Source: Octopus bimaculoides
Taxonomy: Eukaryota
Reading direction: 5' to 3'
Assembly: GCF_001194135.2 (NCBI RefSeq)
Contig: NC_068985.1
Location: 107,858,191 to 107,922,190, forward strand
DNA: 64,000 bases
The notes under the pieces: generated by a model
What the model was told of the DNA's origin: nothing
The model's database searches: none
What the model saw: only the letters and a program-made list of their open reading frames with translations
Position numbers and translations under genes: made by a program
Shown: in pieces, positions 7,021 to 56,699 of the stretch
Layout: each line of letters begins with the position of its first letter
Numbering within the stretch: the first letter of the stretch is position 1

Positions 7021-7116
7021 ATGGACTTGTTCTGTACTTCAAGAAGTGACAATACTGAAATTGATTGTGAAAGCATTTCTGTAACTGACAGTACAAAGTT
7101 CAAACCTCTATACAGT
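7021..7116 (+). CDS. Candidate first coding segment, MDLFCTSRSDNTEIDCESISVTDSTKFKPLYS
   Basis: ATG in strong context (AgaATGG), in-frame stop upstream at 6973-6975, phase-0 donor AGT|gtgagt. The exon probably starts at 6919 or 6923 (gtccttcctttctttaag/acag). Confidence 0.5.
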
Positions 7117-7201
7117 GTGAGTTTGGCCCATAATTGATGCACTGACTTTGTTTTTGTTTTCAACTCCATCGGCTTTACTCATTTACTTAAGTCCCTATTT
7201 T

Positions 7202-7242
7202 ACACACACACACACACACACACACACACACACACACACACA
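7202..7242. repeat. (CA)n microsatellite
   Basis: Direct reading; ~85 nt downstream of the 7117 donor. Confidence 0.95.
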
Positions 7243-7727
7243 TACATACAGACTTGCACATTATGTATTTGTGCATGATATCAGTAGTCAACTAGAACTT
7301 TGTCTTACATTGTAAACTTTCTTCTCTGATATACAATGTATATATCAGGCAGTTTGGTCTATAATCTTTTGCAGACTAAAAAATTAATATCAGCATAAGT
7401 GGCAAATACTATATCAAGTTGCTCCCATGGCTTTCCTACTGTTGAATTTCTTTTTACTAATCTTTTCTACCCCTTGTGATCTTCGGCTTTCTATATACCA
7501 CAGAACCTTCCCAGAACCAAATATTTGTATAACTTTCTAAGTGTTTCATCGGCTTTGGTTATCCTGGTCGCATTCATCTCCTCTCCAGGAGATGAATGCT
7601 ATTGATACTCAAAGAGCTCAGTTTCCTTTTTAAAATCTTTCTGACTATTTGACTGTAACCTGTCAGTTGCACATTCCCATCAGCCTGTAGAGGAGTTGAT
7701 TCTCACCTGATGATAACATATATTTAG

Positions 7728-8160
7728 GTATAGGCGAGGCTGTGTGGTTGAGAAGTTCACTTCCGAGCTTGGTAATTTCAGATTAAGTTCCACTGTGTGG
7801 TACCTTGAGGAAGTGTGCTCCATTATAGACCAAGGTTGTTCAAAGCCTTGTGAGTGGATTTGGTAGATGGAAACTAAAAGAAACGGCAAGCTAGCAGAAA
7901 CGTTAGCACGCCGGGCAAAATGCTTAGCGGTATTTCGTTTGTTTTTACGTTCTGAGTTCAAATTCTGCCGAGGTCGACTTTGCCTTTCATCCTTTTAGGG
8001 TCGATAAATTAAGTACCAGTTATGCACTGGGGTCGATGTAATCAACTTAATCCCTTTGTCTGTCTTTGTTTGTCCCCTCTATGTTTAGCCCCCTATGGGC
8101 AATAAAGAAATAAGGAAACTAAAAGAAACCCATCAAGAGTGTGTGTGTGCTTATCCTTGA
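7728..8160 (+). mobile_element. SINE family C copy interrupted by a family D SINE
   Basis: Head ataggcgaggctgtgtggttgag..., host sequence resumes at 8114 after the insertion. Confidence 0.75.
7885..8113 (+). mobile_element. tRNA-derived SINE, family D (~230 bp, GAAATAA-type tail)
   Basis: B-box-like GAGTTCAAATTC (7954-7965); 16-bp TSD ggaaactaaaagaaac (7869-7884 and 8114-8129). Confidence 0.9.
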
Positions 8161-11100
8161 TTTCACATCATTTGATACCATATTTTCCAGCTTACAAGTT
8201 GTCATATATAGTGTAAACATCTAAATATTGTTGCTATCTTTCCAAACCTTGCTTCATTTCACATGGAATCTTCAGTCCTCTGAAGTTGTCTTTGTGTATA
8301 AATTGACTTATTTTGGTCTGAAAATTTGGACTTTTATGCCAGAAAATATAGTAGTAGTTAACAAGTGTCACTGTGGTATAAATAGTGCCAATCATTTTCA
8401 ATATTATGAAAATATATCTGGCCATAGGAAGATGTTACTTTGCTTGGAAACAGGTGAGTGTCGGTGATAAGCAGGGGTGTCCAGCCATAGGAAATCTGCT
8501 TCAATAACATCCATCTGATCCATGCAGGTATAGAAATGCAGATGTTAAAATGATGATGTTTTATACACACCCCAACACACCACATAGATAATTTCATCTA
8601 TATCATTTGGAACTACTTCACTTTCTCTGGCTCAATTTTTCCAGGCAGTCTAGATGCTTTTTGTTTCCCAGATTAAATCTTGCTAACTGTAGTCAACCCA
8701 TAGCCATTGATCATTTCTTCTTATTTATTGAACAGAAATGTAATCAAATCTAGACTCAAACCTAGGTGTGTGATGAAGAAGTTTGCTTCACAACCGAGTT
8801 AAATTCCACTACATAGTATTTTTGTGGGGAACTGTCTGATGAAAACTGTGTGGAAACCTGTCTTTACACATACACACACAACGCATGTGCAGTTTTCATC
8901 TAAACTGAAATTTTATTGTTTATGTTGTGCCTTTACAAATCAGTGTATAGTTGATACATTATCACTGTATCTATCAGACAGGCTGATTTGATATTGTTTC
9001 ACAAGTGTCATGAGTACACTATGGTGAAATATGAGGGTGAGTCAGAAATGCAGTTTTTATCTGTATTACTTTCTAACTCACACTTGTAGTGAATTAGGTG
9101 GTGATTTCGTTTCACCTAGCTCTGAAATATATTATTTTTTAACACAGTACATCTTAGATAGAAAATGCAACATCTGGTTTTTTTAATGACACGTATATTA
9201 TATTGGTAAAGTTTTGCTTATATTGAATAATTTGACATATATTTGTCTGTGTATGTATTATTTCTTTATGTTCTTATCTTCCATAACTGACAAATAGTGA
9301 TGAATGACTGAAATAAGAACTAAGGTTACTATGATTGACTAAAACCTTTGAAGGGAGAGCTTCAGCATGGTCTTAGTTCTGTGAGGAGTAAAATAAAAAT
9401 GGCAAATCTGTCCGTATTTCTTCTCTCTCTTTTTCTGATCTGTATTTAATATATATCACCTGGTGTTTGCGTGTTGCTATTTTTGGAAGTTTTCCAGACT
9501 TAAAATCCTGTTGTAATTTTAAATTTATCACATCATGGTGTCATATCTGTCTACTTTACTTGAAAACCTGCAGCTTTCCTTGTGTACCCCACCCCACCTA
9601 TCAGCTCCGTTACAGCAGGTGAATGGGATATTGAGGGGGGCTGGTTAAACATTCAAGAGAAAACCCAACTGTCTAAATACCAAATACTTGTGTTCAGCCA
9701 TTGTTTTTGTTGTATATCTAGGATCATCTCTGTTTGAAGTAACCAGTGAAACTTGTGCCAGTAAAACATATGAAGCAACAAAGACCTCCTAGGTTATATT
9801 CCATTAGCACTGCCCCTCCCATCCAAAGGGTCCCACATATGTTGAAACAAAGTAATTTGTTTCATGTCTGGCTGTCCCATGTGTTGTGCATCCTGTTCTA
9901 TTAACTCTCAGCTATTTGAGACACGATTTATCGTCTGTCTTAGCAGGACATTTGACATGACTGAAGCTGATAAGAGAGCCCCATCCTTGTGTGTATGTGT
10001 AATTTGTGATATAGGCACAAGTTTTCAAATATAAATGCTTATATAAACATCAGTACATTCCTGGTATTTTCTTTATCAATTTTGGCAGAATTTGAACCTA
10101 AAATGTATGACTGCATACCAGAGACTTAATTTTTCTCTTTGGAGCCAAAAGATATTTCAGCTCCCAAGAACTACTGACGCTCTGCATGGCTCATCTGATC
10201 CTTATACCTACATCTGGAATGATGATGTTACTACACATTCTGGGTTACTTTCAGGCATTCTGGATTGCATTCAGACAAGGGTCCCTTGACTGAGTGGCAG
10301 TAAATCACTAATGCCCACCTTCTGACCCACAAGTGTGTTGTTTCTTCTCTCAGTCTTGTCTGTTGCTACTATAATGGCCTCATCACTCAGGAGCCTGCAG
10401 GCCTTTTACCCTCACCATATAGGTATCCTGACCCACTCGTCTCTCTACTTCATCACCAGTATGGCAGATCCCCTAACCACACAGCCCAGAACTAATTACT
10501 ATGACCAGTCCTTTCTCCTCAGGACTTTTTGAAATCACTTCCTAGCTCATGACTTTCTGGCAGATGTTGATTTGCAACATTTTAAATTTAACAATAACAT
10601 CCTCATTGATCTTGAAGGGCATGCAAGAGCATGAGCAGAGTTATTTCATCCAGATTCAGCAAGTAAAATACAAAGGTATATAAAATGCCAAGTGGCATTT
10701 TTCGTCTGTTAAGTGATTCTGGCCTATTACAAAATATATAAAGAAAAGTATTGGTATATCTACCAGACAAAGCACAATAGTTAAATATGTTTTAGACATG
10801 ACTGGTGTTTACCTTGGTAGTTATGTTTTATATTAATTGTGCTAGATAACCAGTGATGTAGAGGAAAGAGCTTCCAATATGTTGGGACATCTGTTGTTTG
10901 AAAAATAAGTCCAGTAAATGTTGGTTTGTCTATGATAGAAATGATGCTAGCAGCAGCTGGAACAGTTACTACTACTACTACTACTACACACGTGCATTCA
11001 CATCCATCTTGGGTTAAAACTTCTCTGTAAAGAAGAGATACTTTTTGTATGTTACCCATCCTTAAAACTGTTGTTAATATACAAGCGTATGTGTGTGTGT

Positions 11101-55222: not shown

Positions 55223-55356
55223 AATTTTCTTCTACAGAATTTAAGTCAGTCGATAAACAGTGACAAAGCTCTTTTGTTTAACTCAAGACTGCTCTTATCT
55301 CAGTGTTTGTGGATATCTCATTTGTTTCGTGCATGTGTAGATAAACTTGCAATTAT
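55223..55356 (+). CDS. Coding exon, C-terminal half of the PH domain (phase 0-2)
   Basis: Acceptor ttttttttacag| after a 132-nt intron, in frame with the previous exon. Translates NFLLQNLSQSINSDKALLFNSRLLLSQCLWISHLFRACVDKLAI, with the PH C-terminal helix Trp (W-I-S-H-L) at the expected spacing from the last strand (LLFNS). Donor AT|gtaatt. Confidence 0.7.
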
Positions 55357-55572
55357 GTAATTGGTACTCGTGTCGCATTTGTATACAAGTGGTTGTATGT
55401 GTATGCTTCATTATTTTTGGTGTGTGTGTGTGTGTTTTACCTTTTTCAGTCATTGCACTGCTATTATCCTGGATTACCACCTTAATCTGTCAGTCTCTTT
55501 TGCTGAACTGCTAAATTATGGAGATGAAAATAAACGAATGCCAGTTGCCAAGTCATGGTAGAGATGAACACG

Positions 55573-55682
55573 CACACACACACACACACACACACACACA
55601 CACACACACACACACACACACACACACACACACACACACACACACACACACACACACACACACACACACACACACACACACA
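55573..55682. repeat. (CA)n microsatellite inside a family C SINE
   Basis: Direct reading. Confidence 0.95.
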
Positions 55683-56646
55683 TATGTTGGGTTTCAATGT
55701 AGTTTTCCATCTACCAAATTAATTCACAAGGCATTGGTTGGCCAAGACTATAGTAGAAGACAGTTGTGCAAAGTGACACAGTGGGAGTGAACCTAAAACC
55801 ACGATGCTTGCAAAGGCGAGCTTTTTAACTATACAGCCATGCCTCTATGTTTGTATGTATGTGTATATTCCATATGTACATATGATCATATATGTGTGTG
55901 TGTCTGTGTGTGTATTTATTCAGCCTAATGACTTTAAATGGATATTCCCTGGAATGTTTTACAAGTGATTGTATTTGGGGAATGTGAATCATTCAGCTGT
56001 ATTCTTTCTTGGAGAATCCCGGCGTTTCTAGGCTTTTATGTAAGTCTATTTGTTACACGTCTCAGTGCAAATATGATGTGTACAAATGAAAATCTACAGC
56101 TTTAATATAAGTGTTGTAAGATTCCCATTATATCTTTTATCTTGTTTCAGTCATTAAACTGCAACCATGTTGGGGTACTGCTTTGAAGAATTCCCATGGT
56201 TTTTTAAATTTTTTTTTAGTTGACTGAATTGGCCCCAGACTTATTATTTTAAAGCCTGGTACATATTCTGTCAGTCTCTTTTGCCCAACTGCTAAGTTAT
56301 GAGGACGTAAACAAACACCGGTTGTCAAGCAGTGGCGGGGAACACACGCACACACACAATGGGCTTCTTGTCGTTTCTAACTACTATATCCACTCACAAG
56401 GCTTTGGTCTCCCTGCGGCTATAGTAGAAGACAGTGGGATTAAATCCGAAACCATGTGGCTGGGAAACCAACTTCTTACCACACAGCCCATGTATACTTG
56501 CTTTCTCTTCGTCTCTCTTAAATGCTAACAATCTTAGATGGTTTGATGTAAAATGTATTTGGCTGTCATCAGTTAAGAGATGAGACTTCTTACTTCCAGT
56601 GTCTTCATATTTTAGTATAAATAAATCGATACTTTTTCCTTTTTAG

Positions 56647-56699
56647 TATCTCACCTCTCTCATTGAGGGGCCCCTTGCTACGTCTTAAGAGCCACAAAG
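56647..56699 (+). CDS. Coding exon (phase 2-1), possibly the first strand of a second PH domain
   Basis: Acceptor actttttcctttttag|, donor AAG|gtaatt. The only open frame needs a phase-2 upstream exon, which 55223-55356 supplies. Translates (I)ISPLSLRGPLLRLKSHK. Confidence 0.6.

Follow-up and report, generated by a model that had tools for sequence, protein, structure and literature searches.

A coding exon of the octopus pleckstrin gene and its long flanking introns in 64 kb of Octopus bimaculoides DNA

The subject of this analysis is a 64,000-nucleotide stretch of the Octopus bimaculoides genome (contig NC_068985.1), here called the window, the + strand of which carries coding exon 2 of the octopus pleckstrin gene. 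An initial annotation, made from the letters of the stretch, had chained seven short segments (here segments 1-7) into one transcript of a hidden gene, in which an N-terminal region of about 80 residues, possibly lineage-specific, preceded a PH domain. The PH-domain exon in that chain, segment 5, is real, whereas segments 1-4, 6 and 7 are stop-free intronic stretches that have AG and GT ends by chance. We take the window to be part of the octopus pleckstrin locus, made up of the end of intron 1 (at least 55 kb), exon 2 and about 9 kb at the start of intron 2, and give this reading a probability of about 0.93. The gene was not hidden: it is already known, being annotated in RefSeq as octopus pleckstrin, and the finding is an ordinary one.

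Segment 5 is exon 2 of octopus pleckstrin

In a protein alignment the translation of segment 5 is identical at 55/55 positions to residues 17-71 of XP_014772821.1, a 388-residue RefSeq protein named "pleckstrin [Octopus bimaculoides]" that has PH-DEP-PH architecture. Identity is 54/55 to the O. sinensis and O. vulgaris proteins and 48/55 to that of Argonauta. Within the N-terminal PH domain the exon covers strands beta2-beta4 and the LDGCSVVCPCL loop.

The boundaries of the exon are given by transcript and genomic comparisons. L001, a Logan complementary DNA (cDNA) contig from a related octopus (SRR3401912) that encodes protein P0044, aligns through its nucleotides 715-883 with window 54923-55091 at 94.1% nucleotide identity, and the alignment ends at the exon edges. 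A tblastn search of the window with P0044 recovers the same exon (E 7e-33). The Argonauta exon has the same length and the same boundaries, with 87% nucleotide identity over 54912-55096. The acceptor of intron 1 at 54925 is a CAG with a pyrimidine fraction of 0.88 and is where the L001 alignment begins, and the last ~14 nucleotides of the intron are kept in Argonauta; at the donor of intron 2 the L001 alignment ends and Argonauta likewise reads gtaagt (Table 1). Judged by the octopus cDNA and the Argonauta gene structure, splicing of exon 2 into pleckstrin mRNA at these boundaries is confirmed, and the exact limits and phase proposed for segment 5 by the initial annotation are borne out.

Table 1. 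Features of the window (coordinates are those of the window)
Feature	Position	Strand	Remarks
Intron 1, 3' part	1..54925	+	54.9 kb or more, if exon 1 is not concealed in one of four gaps
3' splice site, intron 1	54906..54925	+	pyrimidine tract ttcttctactttattttcag
Coding exon 2, octopus pleckstrin gene (segment 5)	54926..55090	+	165 nucleotides, phase 0-0
5' splice site, intron 2	55091..55096	+	GTAAGT, consensus match at 6/6 positions
Intron 2, 5' part	55097..64000	+	at least 8.9 kb; segments 6 and 7 inside
Segment 1	7021..7116	+	
Segment 2	33573..33624	+	acceptor AAG
Segment 3	41063..41089	+	donor GTTTGT
Segment 4	52560..52627	+	
Segment 6	55223..55356	+	
Segment 7	56647..56699	+	

Searched against the Pfam PH profile (PF00169, gathering score 25.1 bits), exon 2 alone scores 20.5 bits over profile positions 15-59. 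Addition of the true exon 3 of the gene raises this to 51.0 bits (E 2e-13) over positions 15-105, a gain of 30 bits. With the 55-residue exon as query, exhaustive phmmer against 1.84 billion representatives gave ten matches, of which the best full-length ones (51-55% identity) are Haliotis "pleckstrin-2-like", Elysia "pleckstrin" and the "pleckstrin-2-like" protein of the sponge Sycon. The LDGCxxxCPCL motif had earlier been said to recall pleckstrin-2, and this resemblance reflects real homology, the closest proteins being molluscan "pleckstrin(-2)-like" ones. The LDGC..CPCL motif is common to the octopus exon and vertebrate PLEK2; a tblastn match of 36% identity (E 1e-4) between the two was obtained with a human PLEK2 query and is a lead only.

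Position of the window within the pleckstrin gene

RefSeq and GenBank gene models from three Octopus species and Argonauta were compared with the cDNA. In all of these the upstream partner of exon 2 is a 16-residue first exon, MDTENHCLKTGYLLKQ (residues 1-16), which holds the beta1 strand (GYLLKQ in the family). The downstream partner is exon 3, the start of which is given as GTFKICMPSGDREIYLQAAG... and GTFKICMPSGDRE..., and from residue 72 onward the octopus and Argonauta pleckstrins read GTFKICMPSGDREIYLQAAGEEERNQWAHAIGAVIRS.... The Argonauta gene (locus L002) has 48 coding nucleotides in exon 1, an intron 1 of 46.4 kb, the 165-nucleotide exon 2 and an intron 2 of 14.9 kb. It spans 72.5 kb, compared with about 109 kb for the O. 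bimaculoides gene and 109-113 kb across the three Octopus genomes.

L001 covers all ten coding exons of L002, and in the window it matches at 54923-55091 only. Searches of the read bases by tblastn, blastn-short and a peptide mismatch scan gave no match for exon 1 (MDTENHCLKTGYLLKQ plus the 5' untranslated region), and none for exon 3 or the subsequent exons of P0044, P0040, P0043 and L001. A regular expression for the beta1 exon, G[YFW][LM]..[QKR], gave four chance matches upstream of exon 2 (including GYLLSR at 52399), a number of the same order as that expected by chance, and none had an in-frame ATG or a phase-0 donor. We provisionally place exons 1 and 3 outside the window because the Argonauta introns, when scaled about 1.5-fold, would outreach the 54.9 kb available upstream and the 8.9 kb available downstream.

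Some points weigh against assigning the window to the functional pleckstrin locus. The window holds 1 of 10 coding exons and the identification therefore rests on 55 residues, although these match exactly. Moreover, the place of the window within the gene is taken from the Argonauta structure, by which exon 1 would lie either before position 1 or in one of the four upstream gaps and exon 3 either beyond 64000 or in the gap at 59629-60142. A single visible exon, with exons 1 and 3 absent from 64 kb of read bases, could also mean that this copy of pleckstrin exon 2 is a duplicate or a pseudogene fragment and that the functional locus lies elsewhere. We consider such a copy extremely unlikely, given 100% amino-acid identity to the RefSeq protein, intact consensus splice sites and a 48-nucleotide element of intron 1 that is conserved in collinear position. 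There are also no signs of a processed copy: the intron flanks are present and sequence of the neighbouring exons is absent. The missing neighbours are accounted for by the Argonauta introns of 46 kb and 15 kb together with the 1.5-fold larger Octopus gene. Hence, assignment to the pleckstrin locus itself is retained.

The 48-nucleotide element is AT-rich and lies at window 39958-40005 (+), where it is 92% identical to L002 47853-47900 and collinear with it in intron 1. It stands 15 kb upstream of exon 2 in the window and 8.6 kb upstream in Argonauta hians. When the window was compared with the 92-kb Argonauta locus by blastn, exon 2 and this element were the two unique collinear matches and the remainder was interspersed repeat, which makes the element the sole unique conserved non-exonic match between the two. 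It may be a conserved non-coding element.

In 29 of the 32 2-kb bins of the window the + strand has more T than A, and the cumulative GC skew climbs across the window. Such asymmetry is what one expects where a long transcribed intron is read on its sense strand, and both features are in keeping with a window that lies inside a + strand gene.

The original O. bimaculoides model, UniProt A0A0L8HFD2, is a 239-residue "DEP domain-containing protein" without the N-terminal PH exons, which may explain why exon 2 had looked unannotated.

The seven-segment chain and its chance background

All seven segments of the initial annotation are present on the + strand, with boundaries shifted by 1-2 nucleotides from those first given. 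They total 595 nucleotides, their phases chain and they encode 198 residues without a stop. GT...AG ends are found at all of the proposed introns, the weak spots being the donor of segment 3 and the acceptor of segment 2 (Table 1). Thus far the proposal holds, but the chain is not beyond what chance provides. Between 7116 and 56699 the + strand contains 2736 AG and 3324 GT, and these delimit 13,262 AG..GT segments of 27-300 nucleotides with at least one frame free of stops. When a YAG acceptor, a tract with 70% or more pyrimidines and a donor agreeing with the consensus at 4/6 positions or more were required, 271 of the 13,262 remained, and 35 passed a stricter filter. Given so many candidates, choosing five or six that have compatible phases is trivial.

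The window has a GC fraction of 0.377 and contains five runs of N (18567-19174, 24343-24662, 47870-47961, 51229-51711 and 59629-60142). The first four of these gaps fall within the span of the seven segments, all in proposed introns and bordered by simple repeats (microsatellites) or interspersed repeats. As no segment touches a gap, continuity of the frame across the gaps is irrelevant to the proposed exons; the gaps could hide real exons. By self-BLAST no segment has a second copy in the window, and only the flanks of the segments carry microsatellites or a SINE-like (short interspersed nuclear element-like) repeat.

If the seven segments did form one transcript, it would encode a protein of about 198 residues in which a novel 80-residue N-terminus is followed by a PH domain assembled from segments 5 and 6. 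Apart from the stop-free in-phase chain with its GT-AG borders, this proposal can call on the score of the joined protein against the Pfam PH profile, which is 24.6 bits. That score falls below the gathering score, extends over residues 80-171 only and, as segment 5 alone gives 20.5 bits, rests almost wholly on segment 5. The cDNA and the four gene models splice exon 2 to other exons, MDTENHCLKTGYLLKQ upstream and GTFKICMPSGDRE... downstream, and segment 4 lacks the beta1 strand (GYLLKQ) of the family. When aligned with P0058, the O. bimaculoides gene product, the joined protein matches over segment 5 only, and no counterpart of segments 1-4, 6 and 7 was found in P0058 or in the L001 cDNA. The same holds for the 92-kb syntenic Argonauta locus, in which the real exon is 87% identical: tblastn with the segment peptides gave best E values of 0.11-2.1 for segments 1-4, 6 and 7 as against 3e-32 for segment 5. 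The N-terminal region of about 80 residues, which comes from segments 1-4, is therefore missing from both the protein and the Argonauta locus, and the notion that it is lineage-specific falls with it. The background of 13,262 candidate segments also argues against the chain, as does the 2.5-bit gain contributed by segment 6, a gain equalled or beaten by 2 of 18 controls (see below) and small beside the 30 bits of the true exon 3. A single seven-segment transcript is thus virtually without credibility, and exon 2 of pleckstrin, flanked by introns, remains the reading of segment 5.

Segments 1, 4 and 6 taken alone gave no Pfam match. A word-index protein search with segments 5 and 6 (100 residues) also returned no match, but this is a false negative because P0044 and P0058 are in the same database. 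The search is insensitive for short queries, having missed XP_014772821.1 although the first 55 residues of the query are identical to it, and hence negatives obtained with such queries carry little weight.

The value of the case is methodological. Where cephalopod DNA is AT-rich and introns reach 50 kb or more, short stop-free segments readily line up into phase-compatible chains with GT-AG borders, and here one true exon, with a correct guess of its family, stood among six false ones.

Segment 6 as a possible last exon

The C-terminal half of the PH domain had been assigned to segment 6. The frame of this segment enters a stop directly (...KLAIM, then TAA at 55359-55361), and therefore the donor proposed at 55356 is optional. 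Against Pfam PH, segments 5 and 6 together score 23.0 bits, which is 2.5 bits more than segment 5 alone; thus neither the exon by itself nor the two segments joined reach the 25.1 bits of the generic PH profile, and a complete PH fold scoring above that value, in which segment 6 would supply the beta5-beta7 strands and the C-terminal helix, is not obtained from them. As controls segment 5 was joined to each of 18 AG-preceded, stop-free 45-codon stretches chosen at random from the window. The controls scored 18.9-23.5 bits and two of them reached 23.4 and 23.5 bits. Segment 6 therefore behaves in the Pfam control like random intronic open reading frames, and its PH-like appearance (a Trp within a hydrophobic stretch resembling a helix) is, by these control scores, chance in a translated T-rich intron. 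A phmmer search of the PDB with segments 5 and 6 gave at best an E of 0.35 (the PH domain of AFAP1L2).

A different role for segment 6 was also weighed. Extended to its stop (55223-55361), it could be a young, Octopus-specific alternative last exon, giving an isoform of about 116 residues made of exon 1, exon 2 and NFLLQ...KLAIM. Such an isoform would have a degenerate C-terminal half to its PH domain and would contain neither the DEP domain nor the second PH domain. The segment has a good acceptor (ttttttacag) in phase 0, 132 nucleotides after exon 2, and an in-frame stop; its alignment to the PH profile reaches position 103/105 with the Trp at the C-terminal helix position, and exon 1 plus exon 2 plus segment 6 scores 31.7 bits. 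However, the gain in score lies inside the range of the random controls, and the L, S, F and C-rich composition is typical of a translated T-rich intron. The first 540 nucleotides of Argonauta intron 2 contain no open reading frame like segment 6, and the segment is not conserved elsewhere in that locus either. No protein containing it was found, in a word-index search of low power. On this balance both the isoform and the truncated domain structure that it would have are very unlikely, and we continue to regard segment 6 as part of intron 2.

The pleckstrin family and the predicted role of the octopus protein

A search seeded with the Haliotis protein collected 41 proteins, of which 40 (all but the weakest, P0056) have PH and DEP Pfam domains. 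The set includes P0040, "pleckstrin-like [Argonauta hians]", and the Logan transcript protein P0044, the 90% cluster of which contains XP_014772821.1 (O. bimaculoides), XP_029636316.1 (O. sinensis) and CAI9723179.1 (O. vulgaris). Most matches among the sampled molluscs appear to represent a single gene of pre-duplication type. P0058 has the Pfam domains PF00169, PF00610 and PF00169, and thus the PH-DEP-PH order of the family. In a PDB search the N-terminal PH domain matched that of human pleckstrin (1PLS, E 4e-6) and the DEP domain (residues 139-218) matched that of mouse pleckstrin (1UHW, E 6e-6). The octopus protein shares the PH-DEP-PH architecture with vertebrate PLEK1 (pleckstrin) and PLEK2, but its identity to them is low. 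Compared with O. bimaculoides pleckstrin, the window exon itself shows no differences; the nine other coding exons are not in the window.

Vertebrate pleckstrin and pleckstrin-2 have no enzymatic activity, and their PH domains bind phosphoinositides and act as a membrane anchor (review PMC8637889). Both induce lamellipodia and cell spreading, but they are switched differently: PLEK1 by PKC phosphorylation between the N-terminal PH domain and the DEP domain (Ser113/Thr114/Ser117) and PLEK2 by lipid products of PI3K (PMC8637889). By homology, octopus pleckstrin would be a non-enzymatic adaptor, recruited to the membrane by two phosphoinositide-binding PH domains, and the membrane-bound protein may promote actin-based protrusions and cell spreading. 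The residues encoded by exon 2 make up the central beta strands of the first PH domain in the 388-residue protein. The biological weight of the finding is small, since what has been recovered is the octopus orthologue, already annotated, of a well-known PH-DEP-PH adaptor.

Repeats and transposon relics in the introns

Besides segments 1-4, the intron 1 part of the window contains transposon relics, SINE-like repeats and microsatellites. An Rfam scan of the window gave no match. An open stretch at 38155-38274 (+; ...ELRFIIVKLWCSSRFSKSKLNWKRKILLLV...) weakly resembles the beta1-beta2 region of the C-terminal PH domain of pleckstrin and was rejected: tblastn with human PLEK and PLEK2 gave E 0.089, the stretch has no Pfam match and the likeness is probably due to chance.

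A frameshifted relic of a pogo/Tigger-type DNA transposase occupies 31077-31962 (+) of intron 1, 1.6 kb upstream of segment 2. Its first part, 31077-31313, matches Pfam DDE_1 (PF03184) at 23.1 bits, and the relic goes on in a different frame at 31317-31442. A 191-codon open stretch (31390-31962) follows, with an acidic, Tigger-like C-terminal tail that lacks any Pfam match. A SINE-like family of 90-96% identity is present at 40914-41018 (+), 5726-5830, 22617-22710, 2094-2186 and 59305-59375 (-), and one copy ends 45 nucleotides upstream of segment 3. Multi-copy repeats common to the window and the Argonauta locus lie, for example, at 3072-3142, 4245-4404, 37331-37490, 46463-46628 and 61919-62002. 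A minisatellite with a 23-25-nucleotide unit (51713-51923) adjoins the gap at 51229-51711, and a 33-nucleotide tandem repeat, GATAGGCCACCTCAGTGGCCAACGCGACAGTGC, is found in 2.9 copies of 96% identity at 54431-54526 (+), 400 nucleotides upstream of exon 2.

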